DNA from: Zootoca vivipara
Lineage: Eukaryota
Assembly (NCBI RefSeq): GCF_963506605.1
Contig: NC_083283.1
Coordinates: 46,252,001-46,316,000, forward strand
DNA: 64,000 nucleotides
Direction: 5' to 3'
Shown: one piece after another, positions 3,301 through 63,493 of the stretch
Position numbering within the stretch: the first letter of the stretch is position 1
Layout: the number at the start of each line of letters is the position of its first letter
Notes under the pieces: generated by a model
What the model saw: only the letters and a program-made list of their open reading frames with translations
Databases searched by the model: none
What the model was told of the DNA's origin: nothing
Made by a program: the position numbers and the translations under genes

Positions 3301-6300
3301 TTGGTATCTTTTAAAAATCAAAATATATTACACAACTTTCTAATATTTTCTTTTTAAATCTTTTTTTAAAAAATATTTTCTGCTTTTGTTATAGGTACCC
3401 CTTTGCATTGTCAAAAAGTGCTATGTGCACAGTGGGAGCACCGCATACGTGGCCTCAGATTGTAGGAGCTCTGGTCTGGCTGACAGATTGTGTCAAGGTA
3501 CCACAAAGTCATTGGAATAAGTCTCCAGTTACTTTTACAGGGTTTGCACGTAAATCAAACATGGAAAGCTCGGCTTTACTTTTACTTTTTATTTATTTTT
3601 TATAAACATGGAAACTAAACATTTTATATTGGTTAGGTAAACTCGTAGCCATTTTGGACTCACTGTTCTTCTGGCGATTTTGGCAGCCAGGTTCTTTGCA
3701 ACTTAAGAGTTCTAGAACTACTTTGACTTTAGGTGATATAGAGAAGGCTCGGCCAAAGCAATAAAATCTAGGTAATTTTAATACTGCATTTTCTTGGTTA
3801 CATCTATTTTTGTAAATGTGGTATTGACAAGAGATTTGTACAGCTTCATTGCTGTTACTAAGGAAACCTACATACTCCTGTATAAATGTAAAGAAATCTA
3901 CTTTGCACCTTTATACACTAGTCTATAGCAGCAGCTAGGTATCACCTGTATTCTGTTGAATAGTACTAATTCCTGAGTGTTAATATATGATCTTCTCTGT
4001 CCTTTTCAGTTGTTTTCTTGTTTGAAAGAAAACATGCCATCATTTGATGAAGTGCAGACATTGGAAGGAGAGACTGAAGATGGAATTGTACATAACAAAG
4101 TATGTGACATGAAATATCAGGAAATGTGCTATTTTTGCAAGAGCACAAAAAAGCAATGTTCAGGTCTAAAGGAAGAGACAGCTTCTCTTCCCCTCCCTCT
4201 TGATTTCCCCAACTCTGCCCAAAGTTCCTTCATCTGTGAGCCTACACATAGGCACAGAGTTTAGAACATTTTGAGAGAAACAGAAAATTTCTACTGAGGT
4301 CTACTAATCTCATGCTTTAATTCCTGTTACTAGGCAGGGATGAGTATTCATCTGAGAATTTTATAATTCCATTTGTTTCAACACTGTATCATTACCACCT
4401 CTTCTCTGCTCTCCCCCCACACAGTGGTATACGTATTTCCAAAATACAGTGGTGCAGAAGATTTGCACCAATTCCTAAAGCACCCCCGCCAGTGTAGTTA
4501 GGAGACAGAATTATGCGCCTAATGTCCCTCAAAATACAAAAAAAATTATTTGTTTGAAGTTCCATTAAAGCTTTTGTTAAAATGCAGCTGATTCCAGGAA
4601 ACGTAGAAATAACTTGGTTGCTCATCTTGGGTTATTTTATAGACTTGCTACATAATACAGTTCTGATTGGCCTCTGCTTCTTTGGTTAAAAATCCCTATA
4701 ATGAAACTGACTTGCATAACTTTATTTGCAGCTTTTTTTAGACTACACTAAAAAATGCTATGACCATTTTATGAGTGGTGAAGACAGCTTTGAAGAATTT
4801 GATGCTGAAATATACTCCAAATTAAGTAAGTACAGTAGTTTTCATTTAAAAACTAAATAGAACTCAGTGGATGCAAATGGTAATCTTGTGGTTTCTTTAG
4901 CACTTTTCTGTAGTTAACAAATTTTTAAAAAATTGTTAACCCATAGTGAACTTGTTGACTATAATCAACATTCATTTAGTTAAATGGAAGAATTGTATCT
5001 CAAAACCTTCTCGCTTTGCCTAGCTCCCTTTTCTGTGAACCAAAGTACTTATATCTAGCCTCTAGAAGTCATATGGATAAAAACAGTCCAATCCAGTCCA
5101 GGTATCTTTAGGAAATCCTATCCCTGGTTAAAGTAATCATTGATTATATATAAAAAATAAACAATTTGTGCTTGATAAACTATAGTTCCTGCATTCTATC
5201 TGTCTTTTCTGACAGGCATGGGTTAGCTTTTAGGTCATTGGGGCATTCTAGTGAGTAGTCCATAGGTCTTTAATATTAAATATTGCTACACATGGAGTAA
5301 TGTGAGTAAGAGTATATGATGCTTGATTAAATTTTAGCAAAAATATGGGGACTGATTTTTTTTAAAAAAATGTCCCATAGAGGTGGTGGTGGGAATGGTA
5401 TTAGTGACTCAAACAGCTTCAACCATGCATCAAGTCTTCCTGTGCACTATGTTTTGACAGAATTATGTGATGAATTAGTTAAAGCTTGGCACGTGGGTGG
5501 TGCTGTGGGTTAAGCCTAGGGCTTGCTGATCAGCTCGGTGGTTTGAATCCCTGCGAGCTCCCGTTGCTCGGTCCCAGCTCCTGCCAACCTAGCAGTTCGA
5601 AAGCATGTCAAAGTGCAAGTAGATAAATAGGTACCGCTCTGGCAGGAAGGTAAACGGCGTATCCGTGTGCTGCTCTGGTTTGCCAGAAGCGGCTTAGTCA
5701 TGCTGGCCACATGACCTGGAAGCTGTACCCCGGGACCCTCGGCCAATAGAGCGAGATGAGCGCTGCAACCCCAGAGTCGGTCACGACTGGACCTAATGGT
5801 CAGCGGTCCCTTTACCTTAACCTAGTTAAAGCTTGATACCTTAAATTCTCTTCCTCATGCATTTGCCTTGCTTTCCATCTTTCCCTGAAATCTGTTCTTT
5901 TCTTGATGTTTCCATATATGTTGCCCATTTACATTTCCTTATGGTGTTTCCATTTATCTGGTAGTTTCCATTTCCCCTATCTGCCCAAACTATTCTAGCC
6001 TCTGTTGAACTGTAATATATTACAAATGGTCCTAGGACACGCTCTCAGACCCATGATGTAGCTTTTTTTGCTAATTGTGTACCAACATTGGATAATTGAC
6101 TGCCTGGGAGCCCTTTGTACACCACCTTGAGTTCAATGATGAAATAAAGGTGGAATATAAATGTACTAAATAAAAAGAAGTGCTAGTTGAAACTTTACTG
6201 TATTCATCACACACAACTTGGTATCTGATGAAGTGTGCATGCACACGAAAGCTCATACCAATGACAAACTTAGTTGGTCTCTAAGGTGCTACTGGGAGGA

Positions 6301-9300
6301 ATCTTTTTATTTTGTTTTGACTACGGCCAACCAACACGGCTACCTACCTGTAAACACAACTTGTATTTCATGTAAAAAAGCGACAAAGTATTCCACATAG
6401 AGAGCAGTTAGGGCAATCTATTCTGCAATGCAGCAACTTTATTCCTTCTGTACATTGCCTTGCAAAATAGCAGTGGCTTGTAGTAACATCTGCAGAAGCC
6501 AGTGTAAATTTGCTTCCTAATGTATTCTTTGTTCTGAGCTCCCTATTTTGGTATAATTGATGTGTTGAGTTATTAGCAGGTTATTTTGACTTTTTTCTTT
6601 TTCTTTCAGAGGATCTGTTTAAGATAAATGAACATCATTTGGAGGCGTTCGAAGCAGAACTAAAAACGCTGAATGAGGAGATTGCAAAGCGTGAGAAGGA
6701 GAGAGAAAGTGAACCAGTGTGTAATGGCTGTGGGAATAATATAAATACTATTTAAAATATCTTCCCCACATTTGTTTCATCTGCCATTCAGGATATGATT
6801 TCATTGCAGTATGTTAACTTATCTATTGTGGGCATTTGTTTTCTTTTTTTAAAGGACCGTTTAGTGAGTCTACGTAAACTGAAATCATCTTTAAAGGCAG
6901 ATGTTCAGAAATATAATGCTTACATGGCCAGCCTGGAATCTCGCTCAAATGCTTTTAGTCAAAAATCAAAGAATATTACGGAGGAGTTGGAGACTGGTGG
7001 TAAGGACAAAACACTGCTCAACAGTAACTTGTTGTATATCGTATTTCATTGTCCCATCTGTTTTCTAAAATAAAATATTGTGTTTATCTCTGTATCGTAG
7101 TGATCTTTTTCCAAAGGAGGGATTTGCATAGAAATTATTTGTTTTTGGACTATTGTGAGCTGGTAAACAAGTCAAGTTAGTCATATGAAGATAATTTTAG
7201 ATCTAAAATAAAGGTACCCTTAAAGTATAAAGGGCTAATTTAAAACTATAAGACAGGTTCTTTTTTGTGGTATTTCCCAAGTGTCAGAAAAAAGACGTGT
7301 GTTAAATAGCACTGAGGTTATTTATCTCTTCCCTTCTTACTTTTGCTAAGTTTCTCATTTCTTTCAATAAGTTTCAGTTTGTGAAAAAGCAGAATTCCAC
7401 TTGAGAACTCAAGTTCCAAACACTCTGGAATTCTATCCACAAATGCAAACAAAGTTTTAAGCTAATTTAAAAGAAGTAGAAATGAGTACTGTGATCTGCA
7501 GCAACATGTTCGTAACTGGTTCTGTTTTTCATTTTGTGTTCCTAACAAAGTTTTACATGTTCTTAAATTTAGCCATTGAACTGGAAGCCCTGAAACAAGA
7601 GAATGCTCAACTGAAGTACATTTGTGATAATCAGAAGCACTCCGTTGCAGATATTGAGAGGCTAAAGAGTGAAATAGAGGAGTTGGTGCAGACAGTCAAT
7701 AAAAAAACCAAGGAACTGGAGACAGAGCAACATCACTTGTGGAATGAGGAATTAAAATACGCTAGAGGAAAAGAAGAGGTATGTGAATCTACACTAAGGT
7801 TTTGAAATCAGATATTCCGGCCACTCCCAAAGTCTGCTACTTTATGCTTTATAAACTGGATGAAATTACAGAGCTTGATTCATGTGGTAGAAGAGTGATT
7901 GCTAGAATCCTAATGGTTTTGCAAGCTGCTAGAGCAGGCATCCCCAAACTGTGGCCCTCCAGATGTTTTGACCTACAACTCCCATGATCCCTAGCTAACA
8001 GGACCAGTGGTCAGGGATGATGGGAATTGTAGGCCAAAACATCTGGAGGGCCGAAGTTTGGGGATGCCTGAGCTAGAGCATGAGGTATAGCCACAATTTT
8101 GCTTTTAGTCTTTAACTTAAGCAATAGGAGTTGCAGTTCTGTTTGCCTGACACTGGATCATGTTTCAGTTACAACAGTGCATATTTTTGTTGAGAATTGG
8201 TGTACCAAAACTGACTTGATAAACTGCTGCCCGGGTCACTATAGTCTAGCAACTACTTAACTTTTTTACTGAATCACACTCTGAAAGACAATATAGAAAG
8301 GGCATTTTTTCCATGTTGAAGCACAAAACAAATTTGAGCCAAAAACGCACCAAATACTTTAGATTTTGTTTCCTTGCTCTTGTCAATTTCTCAACTGCAG
8401 TGTTTTAAAGCTGTACCTCTTTTTGTGTTTCCCCCCCTCTTTAACAGATTGAAGCCCAATTGGCAGACTTCCATAGAGGGGCTCGAAAGCTAAAACTAAT
8501 ACCTATAAATTCAGAGAACTCCAGCGGCCTTGATTTTGAGATTAAGTTTAAGCCAGATTCAGGGCCAAACTGTCTGGTCAAATACAGAGAACAAATTCAT
8601 GTAAGTGTGTGCTTATGTTTTGGTGTAGTCCTCTTTAAAAAGAGTCATACAAGGTGTAAGGGGGGGGGCGTAGATTTTAACATTGCTTAGAAGTGAAGAA
8701 CACTTAGCAGAACTAACTTGCCCTACTTGTGGACTTCCCAAAGGCTCATGGATGGCAACTGTTGGTAAAGAGGACGTTGGCTGTCCTTATGATAGAATGG
8801 ATAATGAATCAGAATGTTAGTGCATTATCTTAAATTCATTAAAATATAACTAGGTATTCCAAAGTTGTCACAGTGGGATAAGGATGCACGCAGTCAGGAC
8901 TCATTTGGCCCCTTGGGAGTATCCTATCAGTTCATGGAAATGTCTTTCACCCAGTTTTCATCTGTCTCTCCCACCCCCTTTACAATATCTCTATAATCAT
9001 TACAGGTCCCACTTAAGCACCTCATAAGCAATACTGAAGATGAAATTGAACGTGCAATAAAGAGAAAAATTGGTCTAGAAGAGGCCTTAGAACAGGTGAG
9101 TGTCCAAATACTTTGGCTCCAACCGGAAGCCACTGCCCTTCAAAATTTTAACTGTCCCCAAAACAAAAAATATAAATTAAGTAGATTTGTGTTGGTGGTT
9201 AAGTACAGGTAGCTAGTTAGTAGTGGAGGGAATAGCTGAATGAATAGTGGAATGAAGTAAAGACAGGGAACTATTGATGCCTTTAATCCCTTTTCAGCTA

Positions 9301-11697
9301 CACACTTAACTTCTCTGAACTATTGGCAGATGTAGCTCGTGCATTTTCAAACCCTGTTCTGCATATAGGCTAAGTAGTGAAGGTTTAGATTCTTGAGATG
9401 CCAAATCGGACCATATGATTGATTCTAAACTCATTCCCTGATCCTCTAAGGCAGCATGTTAGGAGTGTTCTGTCTGCCACCACTAGAAGTGTAGATGCCT
9501 AAGTAATGGACTGGATACAGAGGCTACTTTGTTCCTTTCTTCTGCTATTGATATCTTTTTATTAAATGCACATTTTAAAGGGAAGCACAATGGTAGCAGA
9601 GCAGAACAGCACTCTCAAAATGCTAAGAGAAGAAGGCCAAAAAATGGAAGATCATTATCAGCAAATAATGAAGGTAGGTAAAGTGTTGCTAAACAGGTTT
9701 GAACACTTACAAGACAGTGATTTGTTTACTGGAATGCTAGTCTGCATCTATTTATAAATATATGTTTGTAAATAATTCCTTTAAAGTGGTTACTTAGGAC
9801 AATGAATGTTTGCTTTTATGAAATCACGTCTAAAAGTGGGAAGTGGTTGACTACTTCAATTGGCAGGCTTGTGAGAGACCAACTGCTTGTGAGGGATAGT
9901 GTGTCTGAATTTTCATGAAAGTTTGAGGATACACCACAAGACTCTTCACAACCTCCACCTGGAATGGGAGCTAATTATCTGCTGGTGAAGAAAAATATTC
10001 CCTATCCTTGAGCAATATTCCAGAATTGAAACAAAGCCACTATATATTATATTCATAGCCCTCCTCCCAATTTCCTCTTTGAATAGATAGTGTCTATATA
10101 CATGTTACAACCATGTCATTACATTAACATATCCTGAAGTGATAATTCATATTGCAGAAAATTGAAGAAGAGGAAGAAAAAGGTATCCAAGAGCTGCAAT
10201 CGTTGGAAAAACATAAATATTTGCTTGAGGGTGGAGTCAATGAAGGTGTCAGTGAAGCTAAGAAAGAGCTACAAGAACTCGAATGCCAGTAAGTGGAATA
10301 GTCTATCGAGATGTAGATGTAGGATGTGTTTTAAAATATGCTAATGTATCTGAATTTTGTTTCTCTTCTGCAAGTGCTCAGTTATTTTTGAACAGTATCT
10401 ATATTGAATGAATGTGCAAGAAATGATCTAACACCAAATTTGGTATGCCTTAACCCATTAAAATCAGTAAGCATACTTAACAGTTTTGGATTGTAGTCAT
10501 GATGTATTTACTCCCCAGATACCAAGTGGTTATGAAAACAACATCGGAAGAGAAACAGAGACTGCATAAAAATCTAGAACTCTGTCTGGAACTGACATCT
10601 AGCCATCTTGTGTCTGTAAAGGTAACTAATTCTACACTAGCTTAAACTATTATTGATTTTCAACATTTGGTGATTCCTTAAATGCTTATACTTTAAGTGC
10701 TTATTTCTTCATGAGTGACCATACATAGCTTAATAAGCATGCATGTGTTTTTCATATGGAGGGGCTATAGCTCAGTAATAAAGATGTGCAAGCAGAAAGC
10801 CCCAGGTTCAGTCCCTGGCATCTCCATAAGATAGGTGATGAGAAATCCCTAAGTTTGAGTCATTGGAGTGCTGCTACCAGTCAGAACAGATAGCACTCTT
10901 AGATGGAGTAAGTGACCTGATTAGGTACATGGAAGCTTTCCAAATTCATGCAAAATGGGGGGAGATAAAATAATTTGGTACTTTCATATTATATTCCTGT
11001 TTTCCATATATGTGTTGGAATTCTGCCTGATAAAACACTACATATTATAGGTTAAGGTAGGTGTATTTCTCTGGCGGCTTAGAAAGAAGGCAAGTAGTGC
11101 ATATAACTACATTGCAGGGGATTGGACTAGATGATCCTCAGGATCCCTTCCAACTCTATGATTCTGTGCAATTACTAATTTATTAAAATCATGCTATGCT
11201 GGTTTCTAAAAAAAAAAAATCCACCACCTGTATGATTTACTGCACCAGACTGGATGGGCATGTTTATTTGAATGCAAATCTAATTGAGGGCAACAAAGTG
11301 CATTGGATTTATGCCTATAGTTCCTGATCCAACAAATGATATGCATGCAATAGCTTGTTTCTCTGTGTTGGTTTTCTTACCTGGGTCTGGACAAGAGTTT
11401 TTAGCAAGATGATGAGACACAGTCCCAACATAACTTTGATTATGTTGCTTCTCCACAATGTTTGCTTTGTTTTATAAAAGGTTGAGATTTCTCTTCTGCT
11501 GCTATGCCTTTCAAAAAAACAGTTCTAAAATCTGACCTCTTATTTTATTCTAGACCTACCTGACTGAACAAAATGCAAAAGTTGATAGGGCGTTTGGTAA
11601 ACTGATGTCTGAAGATCCATTGGCAAGCTTGAAAGAAATCCTCAATAGTTACAAAAAGAAGGTTGAGACTTTGTATGCCTCGGAAAAAGGAGAGTGA
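231..11697 (+). CDS. NDC80: Kinetochore protein NDC80/HEC1, 5'-partial spliced CDS, 14 exons in window
   Basis: join(231..357,863..1035,3395..3497,4010..4099,4732..4825,6610..6716,6855..6999,7573..7778,8448..8600,9006..9095,9581..9673,10158..10288,10519..10621,11554..11697). 1759 nt = 1 + 586 codons incl. TGA; all introns GT-AG. Peptides [19 protein letters not shown] and [24 protein letters not shown] match the NDC80 CH domain, followed by coiled coil. Confidence 0.97.
863..1035 (+). CDS. NDC80: NDC80 exon (2nd)
   Basis: ctcag|TTT...GG|gtaag; [30 protein letters not shown]...[13 protein letters not shown]. Confidence 0.95.
1061..1316. mobile_element. Tc1/mariner (Tigger-like) MITE
   Basis: TA|CAGTGGTACCTC ... 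GAGGTATGACTG|TA. Confidence 0.8.
2142..2362. mobile_element. Tc1/mariner MITE
   Basis: TA|CAGTGGTACCTTGG ... CCAAGGTACCACTG|TA. Confidence 0.85.
2367..2529 (-). mobile_element. Sauria SINE, 5'-truncated
   Basis: Reverse complement of the 3' half of the 5489 copy; 16-bp TSD AAGGTACCACTGTAAA. Confidence 0.9.
3395..3497 (+). CDS. NDC80: NDC80 exon (3rd)
   Basis: atag|G...AAG|gta; [34 protein letters not shown]. Confidence 0.95.
4010..4099 (+). CDS. NDC80: NDC80 exon (4th)
   Basis: ttcag|TTG...AAA|gtatgt; [30 protein letters not shown]. Confidence 0.93.
4732..4825 (+). CDS. NDC80: NDC80 exon (5th)
   Basis: tgcag|CTT...A|gtaag; [31 protein letters not shown]. Confidence 0.94.
5489..5822 (+). 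mobile_element. Sauria SINE, near full length
   Basis: tRNA-like head, CCTTTACCTT tail, 13-bp TSD TAGTTAAAGCTTG (5476-5488, 5823-5835). Confidence 0.92.
6218..6261 (+). ncRNA. Minimal type I hammerhead ribozyme motif (Penelope-like element type)
   Basis: TTGGTAT-CTGATGA-A-GTGTGCATGCACAC-GAAA-GC-TC-ATACCAA: stem I 7 bp, core CUGAUGA/GAAA, palindromic stem II, AGCU stem III; predicted cut at 6254/6255. Confidence 0.85.
6221..6353 (+). mobile_element. Short Penelope-like (pLTR-type) retroposon copy, variant A
   Basis: Homologous to the copies at 15577, 37012 and 58441; 10-bp TSD ACACAACTTG at 6211-6220 and 6354-6363. Confidence 0.8.
6610..6716 (+). CDS. NDC80: NDC80 exon (6th)
   Basis: ttcag|AG...CCA|gtgtgt; [35 protein letters not shown]. 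Confidence 0.92.
6855..6999 (+). CDS. NDC80: NDC80 exon (7th)
   Basis: taaag|GAC...G|gtaag; [28 protein letters not shown]. Confidence 0.93.
7573..7778 (+). CDS. NDC80: NDC80 exon (8th)
   Basis: ttag|CC...GAG|gtatgt; [14 protein letters not shown]...[14 protein letters not shown]. Confidence 0.94.
7935..8070. mobile_element. hAT-type palindromic MITE
   Basis: TIR CAGGCATCCCCAAACT; 8-bp TSD TGCTAGAG/AGCTAGAG; second copy at 27286. Confidence 0.88.
8448..8600 (+). CDS. NDC80: NDC80 exon (9th), loop region
   Basis: aacag|ATT...CAT|gtaag; [34 protein letters not shown]. Confidence 0.94.
9006..9095 (+). CDS. NDC80: NDC80 exon (10th)
   Basis: tacag|GTC...CAG|gtgag; [30 protein letters not shown]. 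Confidence 0.93.
9581..9673 (+). CDS. NDC80: NDC80 exon (11th)
   Basis: taaag|GGA...AAG|gtagg; [31 protein letters not shown]. Confidence 0.9.
10158..10288 (+). CDS. NDC80: NDC80 exon (12th)
   Basis: tgcag|AAA...CA|gtaag; [30 protein letters not shown]. Confidence 0.93.
10519..10621 (+). CDS. NDC80: NDC80 exon (13th)
   Basis: cccag|A...AAG|gtaac; [34 protein letters not shown]. Confidence 0.92.
10761..10941 (+). mobile_element. Old tRNA-derived SINE
   Basis: GGGGCTATAGCTCAGT head with B-box-like GGTTCAGTCCC; related to 57793-57968. Confidence 0.6.
11110..11168 (+). mobile_element. CR1-type 3' end fragment
   Basis: TTGGACTAGATGATCCTCAGGATCCCTTCCAACTCTATGATTCT. Confidence 0.7.
11554..11697 (+). 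CDS. NDC80: NDC80 terminal coding exon
   Basis: tctag|ACC...GAG TGA; [36 protein letters not shown]. Confidence 0.92.
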   Translation, partial: TYLTEQNAKVDRAFGKLMSEDPLASLKEILNSYKKKVETLYASEKGE

Positions 11698-15320: not shown

Positions 15321-15576
15321 ACTGATGCCTATCCCTGGGTCCACCACACCTCTTCCTACCCCTAATATATATTTGGGTCTGGCTATTTTCCTATTCTAAC
15401 ATATTGGCTCTAATAAAATTCTAACAGTATTAAAGTCAAGTACTTAGCACCGACAGATCCACACCATTTCTTGGTAGCACACATCCATATAAAAAAATAT
15501 AACAATAAAAGGTAGATAAGTTGGTTTCATTTAACATTATAATTCTTGTATAAATAAGAAAGGCCTGGATTGCCCT

Positions 15577-15747
15577 TAAAGGCCAACTAAGTTTATATTT
15601 TGGTATGAGCTTTCGTGTGCATGCACACTTCTTCAGATACACACGAAAGCTCATACCAAAATATAAACTTAGTTGGTCTTTAAGGTGCTACTGAAGGAAT
15701 TTTTTTATTTTGCTTCGACTCAGACCAACACGGCTACCTACCTGTAA
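15577..15747. mobile_element. Penelope-like retroposon copy with inverted segment, variant B
   Basis: Minus-strand segment 15577-15640 abuts plus-strand segment 15640-15747; flanked by CTGGATTGCCCT at 15565-15576 and 15748-15759. Confidence 0.8.
15601..15640 (-). ncRNA. Minimal hammerhead ribozyme motif
   Basis: Reverse complement reads GTAT-CTGAAGA-A-GTGTGCATGCACAC-GAAA-GCTC-ATACCA; stem I only 4 bp. Confidence 0.75.
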
Positions 15748-17064
15748 CTGGATTGCCCTGCTGGTGCTAGCCAAGCTGCTCTAGTAGTTTCAAAGCTGCC
15801 ACATGGTTGGATGGCACTTTAAAGTATGAGACACTACTCTCCTGCTCCAATGGCTTAATTAGAAATCCACACAGTAGAGCAGATGGAAGAAAAAGGAAAT
15901 AAGGTAACCCTAGTTAGACAATTCCTCTGGGCAATAGGGATTGTGTCAAAGATTTCATAGAAAAGCTATGATGGCAGAGGAATTTGAAGTAAGGAGTAGA
16001 TTAATGGAAGCAGTAACAGGTATAGGAACAGCAAGGAAGAAAGCAATATATTTAAGGGAGCAGCAAACAGTGATGAAGTAATCCGTGTGAAGGTAACATT
16101 TATGGTTTTAAGAACGGGAAGGCCTTGGAGGATTTTGAAAGTAAGCAAACATGTTTGAATGGGATATGGAAATAGAAAGGAAGCCAGTATAGGATTGAAG
16201 GAGTAATGCGTAACCAGGCAAAAGGTGCATGATGTGGGCAGCAGAGGCAAATCAATCTACCTTTACATTAGATTGGAAACAGACGAGTCTAGACTGAAAG
16301 GTGCTAAGACTGAAAGAAGGGCCATGCAATAGTCACCAAATTTGGTGAGAAGTGCTGCTGGGTAGCATGACATGCTGCGATTCCAGGTACAGCAGTGAAT
16401 CCAGGAGAACACTAGCATGTGAATATAAATGACCTGGTTCTTTTCCCGACATATAAGGCATTCTGCCTTTCGATCACCTCACACAAATAGGGAAATCCTC
16501 CACTGCTGTCCTCTGTCTAGGCCACTACGGCATAGGCGCGCTTATCCAACACGCATTACGAAAAGAGAAAGGACGTTTCCAGCACTGGGAAGGGCACCTG
16601 GGAGGAAACTCCCTCCCCTCAGGAGTAATTTAACGGCCAGAGGAATACCGGCAGTTTCGCTTCCCACTTTTCACGTCAGTGGCGCTCGCGCCCTTGATTC
16701 TCGGAGCTAGCCGGGTTTCGACCTCGCCAGAACAATAGTTGCTATGGTGCGTTTCACAGCGGACGTGACGTCCTTGGACTAGAACGGGCCGGAGCCCCCT
16801 TGACAGACGCCGGATTGAAACTCCCGCGAGCGCTTTCGCTTCCGGTTTTGCCCCCTCCCTCGCCCCGCCCCCTCACGTCCGAATCGTCCCCCTCTTTGGG
16901 TTTTGTTCCCCGCAGCGGGGCTCAGGGGCCCGCCCCAGTCTACGCCCCGCCCCTTTCCTCTGCCTTCGCAGCCGCTCCTCTGAGCTGGGCGAGCGGCGGC
17001 GGATGCGGGCGGCTCGGTGGTTGAGCTGAGGCGCTCGCTCGCTCGCAGGGAACTGTCAGTCAAC

Positions 17065-63493
<46,429 letters not shown>

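Follow-up and report, generated by a model that had tools for sequence, protein, structure and literature searches.

A 64,000-nt stretch of the Zootoca vivipara genome (RefSeq assembly GCF_963506605.1, contig NC_083283.1, positions 46,252,001 to 46,316,000, forward strand; here called the window and numbered from its first letter) carries four insertions of a ~130-bp element that contains a minimal type-I hammerhead ribozyme motif of the kind known from Penelope-like elements (PLEs). The element belongs to a family of dispersed copies, on the order of 10^5 in the genome, with precise ends, and RNA reads showed no accumulation of ends at the predicted cleavage site. We consider it likely, at roughly two chances in three, that the element is a non-coding mini-derivative of a Poseidon/Penelope-type PLE, similar to a short interspersed nuclear element (SINE) and moved by a PLE enzyme as a linear-template module.

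The four copies had been recognised in an original prediction made from the letters of the window alone, and pattern searches agree with it: a 30-nt core pattern and the 28-nt central block of the element each matched four times in the window against 0.00 matches expected by chance. Neither blastn nor an nhmmer profile found an additional copy over the window, even a diverged one, and the element makes up ~0.7% of it. The predicted flanking direct repeats, or target-site duplications (TSDs), were read at all four insertions, with lengths of 7, 10, 12 and 14–15 bp (Table 1); at the fourth, the repeat has the pattern TTAGTTTTTT(T)ATAG. Two insertions are simple (6221–6353 and 37013–37142), both running from GTATC to CCTGTAA(C), and two are composites with an inverted arm (15577–15747 and 58441–58535). 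The claim that each copy opens with the hammerhead motif holds for the simple pair but not for the composites, since at 15577 the hammerhead lies on the minus strand within the inverted arm and at 58441 the motif is preceded by an inverted 3' end. In both composites one arm starts at the canonical 3' terminus and the other starts internally at a target microhomology, either an A/T run or the trinucleotide AGG through which the outer end of the inverted arm of the second copy meets the target. The inner end of that arm is the exact first base of the family, and both internally primed arms (15577–15640 and 58451–58535) end exactly at family position 1. The composites look as if both target strands, once nicked, had served as primers; inverted arms are a hallmark of PLEs (PMC8557442).

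Two subfamilies can be distinguished, A (copies 6221 and 58451) and B (37013 and 15641), ~87% identical to one another, with 99% identity between the two B copies. In subfamily A the reading frame is open from the ATG through the element end (38 codons in copy 6221, ATG at 6239; open also in 58451), and in subfamily B it is broken by a frameshift and meets a stop 9 codons past the ATG. Copy 6221 has NDC80 exons on both sides on the plus strand (205–399, 3315–3602 and 4720–4857, with Ndc80_HEC and DUF5595, and 10146–10289, the C-terminal coiled coil) and is therefore intronic and in sense orientation, as had been predicted. At the targets of both subfamily-B copies the sequence CTGGATT directly follows the element 3' end (37143–37149 and 15748–15759), which may reflect a target preference (the anole element PAc, described below, prefers ATT) or coincidence.

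Table 1. Coordinates of the element copies, their TSDs and the hammerhead motif of copy 1 in the window
Feature	Position	Strand	Remarks
Left TSD, copy 1	6211–6220		ACACAACTTG; identical 10-mer at 6354–6363
Copy 1, subfamily A	6221–6353	+	Full length, GTATC to CCTGTAA, 133 bp; sense in NDC80 intron
Minimal type-I hammerhead, copy 1	6221–6259	+	Predicted cut after C17, 6254/6255
Right TSD, copy 1	6354–6363		ACACAACTTG
Left TSD, copy 2	15565–15576		CTGGATTGCCCT; identical 12-mer at 15748–15759
Copy 2, inverted arm	15577–15640	-	Reverse complement of element positions 1 to ~64; complete hammerhead on minus strand
Copy 2, direct arm, subfamily B	15641–15747	+	5'-truncated inside helix II (start ~15641); canonical 3' end CCTGTAA
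Right TSD, copy 2	15748–15759		CTGGATTGCCCT
Left TSD, copy 3	37005–37011		TGGATTT; identical 7-mer at 37143–37149
Copy 3, subfamily B	37013–37142	+	Full length, intact hammerhead
Right TSD, copy 3	37143–37149		TGGATTT
Left TSD, copy 4	58427–58440		TTAGTTTTTTATAG; 58536–58550 has TTAGTTTTTTTATAG, one T more
Copy 4, inverted fragment	58441–58453	-	11–14 nt of element 3' terminus, reverse complement of TACCTACCTGTAA; 3-nt overlap GTA with direct arm
Copy 4, direct arm, subfamily A	58451–58535	+	Positions 1 to ~85; ends in internal T-run, ~45 nt short of normal 3' end
Right TSD, copy 4	58536–58550		TTAGTTTTTTTATAG

The first 39 nt of the element read GUAU-CUGA(N)GA-A-GUGUG CAUG CACAC-GAAA-GCU-C/AUAC, the slash marking the predicted cut. 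All core nucleotides (C3-U4-G5-A6-N7-G8-A9, G12-A13-A14, A15.1/U16.1 and H17) are present in copies 6221 and 37013 and in the minus-strand arm of 15577. In copy 6221 the core is CUGAUGA, with helix I GUAU/AUAC and helix II GUGUG-CAUG-CACAC; in copy 37013 the landmarks are C3 at 37017, N7 at 37021, the ATG at 37031, G12 at 37039 and the predicted cut at 37046/37047. The G-to-A change noted earlier for the fourth copy was confirmed as G12>A at 58477, the sole failing feature of the hammerhead in the arm starting at 58451. The minimum-free-energy fold of a monomer contains a helix I of 4–5 bp and a helix II of 5 bp with a CAUG loop. The motif also has an unpaired A before helix II, a G10.1-C11.1 pair and a palindromic helix III, A15.1-GC-U16.1 (AGCU), and the published criteria for PLE minimal hammerheads include one additional nucleotide inserted after position 9 and ahead of 10.1, the G10.1-C11.1 pair and a palindromic 15.2-16.2 (PMC4209133). 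A minimal-hammerhead descriptor written from those criteria returned three intact motifs in the window versus 0.005 expected per shuffled window. Judged by its sequence, the candidate ribozyme shows every feature published for PLE minimal hammerheads, and the proposal that it is their minimal, dimer-type variant was borne out.

With the palindrome AGCU as its helix III, a monomer is unable to form this helix, and such motifs are therefore thought to act as dimers. We infer that cleavage by the hammerhead of the element would require either pairing with another copy or assistance from a protein. Two copies cofolded at -40.6 kcal/mol versus 2 x -11.8 kcal/mol for the monomers. The dimer with swapped helix II was rejected as meaningful, because any hairpin with a palindromic loop forms one and it cannot join two AGCU helix III halves. 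Likewise, the 14-nt palindrome in helix II, which the original prediction had pointed out, is just a 5-bp stem with a palindromic CAUG loop and has no significance attached to it here; helix II of PAc is not palindromic. The fold of the whole element was no better than that of shuffled sequences (z = -0.19), and a consensus fold of the four copies, too few sequences for the purpose, showed no covariation. Between subfamilies A and B, 1 of 39 hammerhead columns differs (N7, the free core position) versus 16 of 97 other columns (Fisher p = 0.04), a point in favour of the PLE derivation. DNA-read variation of at least 3% occurs in the hammerhead only at N7 (37021) and G12 (37039, a CpG site, 10% G>A).

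To characterise the family beyond the window, a public DNA-type run of the same organism and two raw-read RNA runs (ordinary paired-end libraries) were compared with the element. In the DNA run 10,015 contigs fell on the element, with a summed depth of 1–1.6 million versus 4–8 in the unique flanks. This points to ~10^5 copies, a figure good to an order of magnitude only, as read depth is not copy number, and in line with four copies per 64 kb; an abundant, non-coding, TSD-flanked retroposon family had been predicted. At 37013 the depth drops from ~3x10^5 to ~20 over a single bin, and at the 3' end it likewise collapses over a single bin; loose ends of heterogeneous sequence accumulate exactly at 37013 and at 37142/37143. 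The family thus has precise ends, and the earlier view that its 5' boundary is defined, not left by random truncation, is upheld. The first base is the G of GTATC: the additional G that the original prediction had allowed before it belongs to the TSD at 6220, and at 37012 the depth lies ~200-fold below that of the element interior. The description of the unit as ribozyme-bounded has to be dropped, since the predicted cut (6254/6255; 37046/37047) lies 34 nt inside the element and neither end is made by the hammerhead. In all four window insertions the identical terminus CCTGTAA(C) adjoins unrelated target DNA, with no poly(A), no A-tail and no target homology. Some reads and contigs end at 37100–37105, and copy 58451 stops ~45 nt short; these ends fall within a T-run, a kind of sequence at which alignments are easily broken. 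PLEs can have an optional 'tail' of 30–40 bp between two alternative start sites of the reverse transcriptase (RT).

Opposite-strand joints are numerous in both RNA and DNA reads. Head-to-tail junctions in DNA contigs are few, with depth 5–14 versus ~10^6 for the family (for example 37142 to 37012 with CA between, and 37051 to 37012). Tandem copies are thus rare genome-wide, and within the window there is none, all four copies being solitary. Element 31-mers are present in three further organisms, and scans of metagenome contigs with element patterns returned nothing. Open reading frames (ORFs) over element copies in other assemblies (proteins P0002, P0003 and P0004; ENA contigs of 511–566 bp) are spurious: P0004 reads through an inverted arm and then a direct copy, and P0002 and P0003 contain an antisense tRNA-like stretch (…EPGSPDYEST.LNHYTTL) directly before the first codons of the element (VSE.EC-MH). 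Loose ends upstream of 37013 share a recurrent consensus, ATATAAGGGTCTGGTTACTTCTGTTTCAGT, with an agreement of 0.55–0.58 in the two RNA runs and a similar form in another species; the string (...TATAAGGGTCTGGTTACTTCTGTTTCAGT directly before GTATC, also given as ...CTTCTGTTTCAGT) recurs in boundary-crossing reads of two species and is absent from the window. It resembles a TATA box ~29 nt upstream combined with a 3' splice site that stops one base short of the boundary, and the Drosophila virilis Penelope has an intron whose end coincides with the 5' edge of helix I (PMC4209133); these resemblances we treat as a lead rather than a finding. The upstream string suggests a longer variant or parent element.

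In the two RNA runs, 92–93% of element reads run into unrelated sequence, with both strands represented. No pile of read starts or ends was seen anywhere in these runs, including the predicted cleavage site 37046/37047, a null result that covers only embedded monomers in ordinary RNA-seq, where 130-nt circles would be missed. Host transcripts reading through the copies account best for the RNA signal. The hammerhead is probably silent in effect in its ~10^5 dispersed single copies, that of the NDC80 intron among them. At several sites in 37048–37077 the RNA reads show A>G (first mate on the minus strand) or T>C (first mate on the plus strand) at 10–49%, versus 0.02–0.2% of DNA depth, reaching 27% and 49% A>G at 37065 in the two runs. 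This could be ADAR-type editing of double-stranded RNA from inverted copies; alternatively, a few variant loci could be expressed, neighbouring sites having similar counts.

The element was compared by eye, over short motifs, with the consensus of PAc (Poseidon_Ac of Anolis carolinensis; Frangieh et al., 2024, PMC11167929), in which the motif is CUGAGGA-U-helix II-GAAA-CGUC/AGGAG, the pseudo-long terminal repeat (pLTR) ends in ...CUGAGGA and the ATG opens helix II. In both, the hammerhead is located where pLTR and ORF meet and helix II includes the ATG, here in the loop (37031), and helix III is a palindrome, ACGU in PAc and AGCU in the element. The RT of PAc starts in an AC-rich stem-loop at ORF position +111–118, and the element 3' end lies at +112 from its ATG (37142); the distance from C3 to the end is 117–124 nt in PAc and 125 nt in the element. 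The strings before the end, GCTTCGAC...CAACAC in the element and GCCTTCGACAACAC in PAc, have GC(C)TTCGAC...AACAC (GCYTTCGAC) in common. The PAc enzyme extends both target strands in vitro, matching the priming from both strands suggested by the composites, and in the anole study, as here, no RNA-seq read ended at the cleavage site. Apart from the core and the short string, however, the sequences are unrelated; PAc is autonomous, 2.7 kb long and arranged in tandem arrays, whereas the present element is a 130-bp non-coding unit that occurs singly. PAc RNA up to +172 is required in vitro, and the element copies are without the region from +113 to +172.

Among known carriers of such motifs, the PLE minimal hammerheads (Cervera and de la Pena, 2014, PMC4209133; see also Lunse, Weinberg and Breaker, 2017, as cited in PMC6765202) have in common with the element the type-I topology, a helix I of 4–5 bp, the bulged nucleotide before helix II, G10.1-C11.1 and a palindromic helix III formed only in the dimer, and they too occur as massive numbers of single dispersed motifs and as nearby opposite-strand pairs. 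In that study, however, reptile motifs were reported only in turtle and snakes and dispersed motifs were taken as probable truncated PLEs, whereas the carrier described here is a sharply bounded 130-bp unit in ~10^5 copies, with a helix II of 5 bp instead of 6–8 bp. The non-LTR (long terminal repeat) retrozymes of animals (Cervera and de la Pena, 2020, PMC7229834; Li, Clavereau and Pollet, 2026, bioRxiv 10.64898/2026.07.22.740005) are likewise short, AT-rich, non-autonomous and hammerhead-bearing, dimer-dependent in vertebrates, related to PLE pLTRs and commonly found as dispersed monomers. They differ in being defined by tandem arrays and circular RNAs, where the element shows only few head-to-tail junctions and its inserts do not end at the cleavage site. 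The schistosome Sm-alpha and Sj-alpha are also short interspersed retroposons with a hammerhead, but they have an RNA polymerase III (Pol III) promoter and a canonical, monomer-active hammerhead; the element has no recognisable A/B boxes, and its T7 run would terminate Pol III. A Pol III SINE derived from tRNA, 7SL or 5S RNA was rejected for this run (37094–37100), the missing A/B boxes, the lack of an A-rich, microsatellite or long interspersed nuclear element (LINE)-type tail and the absence of an Rfam tRNA match; a DNA transposon or miniature inverted-repeat transposable element was rejected because the TSDs differ in length and terminal inverted repeats are lacking.

We infer from these likenesses that the element could be mobilised as follows. 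The element corresponds to the PLE module between hammerhead and RT start, which would begin at the helix I base, 4 nt ahead of the hammerhead core, run through the former start codon in helix II and end at an AC-rich site ~112 nt further on. A PLE enzyme, with RT and GIY-YIG endonuclease activities and encoded elsewhere, would nick the target DNA; synthesis of cDNA would begin at the fixed internal AC-rich RNA site without target homology and would extend to the 5' end of a discrete linear RNA. Inserts of 130 bp would result, precise at the 3' end, lacking poly(A) and flanked by TSDs of variable length, and inverted arms would be frequent when the second DNA strand also primes. Since the two internally primed arms halt at position 1, a linear RNA whose 5' end is discrete is the more likely template than a circle.

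Several observations weigh against the derivation from a PLE and its machinery. No autonomous partner was found: the window holds no ORF with RT and GIY-YIG, for which the original prediction had suggested looking, and its only RT, encoded by two overlapping ORFs of 373 and 348 aa at 44553–46512 on the plus strand (frameshifted; Pfam RVT_1, E = 1e-21 and 2e-7), is of LINE type without GIY-YIG and hence not the partner of the hammerhead element. A HMMER search with the 38-aa ORF of copy 6221 against 1.84 billion proteins gave no parental PLE ORF; its matches were a single unrelated repeat protein and four short spurious ORFs from ENA contigs. Rfam, another suggested check, gave no match to a hammerhead, an HDV-like or other ribozyme or a tRNA, either over the whole window at the gathering threshold or in 6150–6420 at E<=10; a missing hammerhead match is expected, because the models require a helix III hairpin that the element lacks. 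Within the family, sites variable at 3% or more number 2 of 39 in the hammerhead and 8 of 91 in the remainder, so that the hammerhead is not clearly the less variable part. The discrete 5' end at GTATC cannot be made by the hammerhead, whose predicted cut lies inside the element, and is not explained by PLE biochemistry. Finally, as the copies end at +112 and PAc RNA needs sequence up to +172 in vitro, the copies should not themselves be templates. On this analysis the inserted copies are probably unable to multiply further, and growth of the family probably depends on a small number of master loci, none of which was seen here.

A stronger version of the PLE-derived reading, in which the 130-nt unit would be a genuine SINE served by the Penelope machinery, with a linear RNA, a 5' end at the base of helix I, a copied 3' end at the internal RT start and ~10^5 copies from a few masters, is a tentative and rather doubtful proposal. 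If it holds, the hammerhead would be kept in the masters as an enzyme-recruiting or processing module and not for defining the insert ends, and the family would show, in nature, what the minimal PLE template is in vivo and how the 5' end is made, by a transcription start or by a boundary linked to a splice acceptor, as in the D. virilis Penelope.

The same units could arise without any separate family, as by-products of autonomous PLE mRNAs: an RT that starts ~112 nt into the ORF could do so too at the 5'-proximal copy of its start site in any PLE transcript, run off the mRNA 5' end (a transcription start at GTATC) and deposit the leader only. The frame that stays open through the whole of subfamily A, the agreement of the 3' end with the PAc start site, and the discrete 5' end with run-off of the aberrant arms at position 1, as on a linear RNA, all fit this explanation, and the upstream string in boundary reads of two species suggests a longer parent. 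Yet the younger subfamily B is frameshifted and stopped, so that this ATG cannot open an enzyme gene in its source, no protein of PLE-sized length with this N-terminus was found among the 1.84 billion searched, and the RNA reads with the upstream string are transcripts that start further upstream than GTATC; on balance we regard by-products as a fairly unlikely origin. It is unlikely, too, that the hammerhead-like sequence never acts as a ribozyme and persists through the youth of the copies or through a protein-binding or translation-start role in the parent, the element being a plain short retroposon. The failure of the Rfam models, the lack of read ends at the cleavage site, the ordinary within-family conservation of the core and the unremarkable folding of the whole element would all be expected in that case, and PLE minimal hammerheads have low activity in vitro (PMC4209133), with PAc cleavage needing protein and being dispensable for insertion (PMC11167929). 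Against it stand the full core with four independent PLE-specific features, at ~0.005 per window by chance, the restriction of hammerhead change between subfamilies to N7, and the homologous PAc motif, which cleaves and in which the C3G and G8C mutations act as in a true hammerhead (PMC11167929).

A retrozyme origin would account for the inserts differently: tandem masters would be transcribed, paired hammerheads would release 130-nt monomers, tRNA ligase would circularise them, and the PLE RT, starting at the AC-rich site, would go round the circle a single time, giving unit-length inserts with one and the same RNA position at both ends. A dimer-dependent hammerhead, inserts of exactly unit length and a few head-to-tail junctions in DNA contigs speak for it; moreover, reptile retrozyme families averaging 176 bp and related to PLE pLTRs have been published, and a circular PLE template has been proposed (PMC4209133). 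We nevertheless consider this origin very unlikely. All four window copies are solitary, the tandem junctions are shallow beside the depth of the family, and among the RNA joints listed there is no dominant back-joint, just as no reads end at the cleavage site, with the reservation already made for 130-nt circles in ordinary RNA-seq. Internally primed cDNAs on a circle would, in addition, pass position 1, and those at 15577 and 58441 both stop there.

Apart from the element, the window contains another interspersed repeat in four copies (2390–2575, minus; 5698–5793, plus; 20782–20988, minus; 23552–23791, minus), with a common translated string ending RDER..P..V, and a run of 137 N at 49459–49595, an assembly gap or masked sequence.

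As to novelty, which the original prediction had left undecided, the kind is known: PLE minimal hammerheads, their massive single dispersed motifs, their opposite-strand pairs, their dimer dependence and PLE-derived non-autonomous reptile units are all already published (PMC4209133, PMC11167929 and bioRxiv 10.64898/2026.07.22.740005). This particular sequence was not found: a search with four 19–20-nt element strings returned no paper in the searchable literature. For annotation, it is a major repeat family to be classed as PLE-derived and not as an unknown SINE. It shows that tens of thousands of sense hammerhead motifs can lie in introns of essential genes, such as NDC80, without visible cleavage, in agreement with the idea that these minimal ribozymes stay inactive until paired or assisted. 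PLEs are the least understood class of retrotransposons, and the family offers an independent, living-genome view of their start-site rule, with ~10^5 inserts ending at the equivalent RNA position; what it adds beyond the biochemistry is an equally precise 5' end just upstream of the hammerhead.

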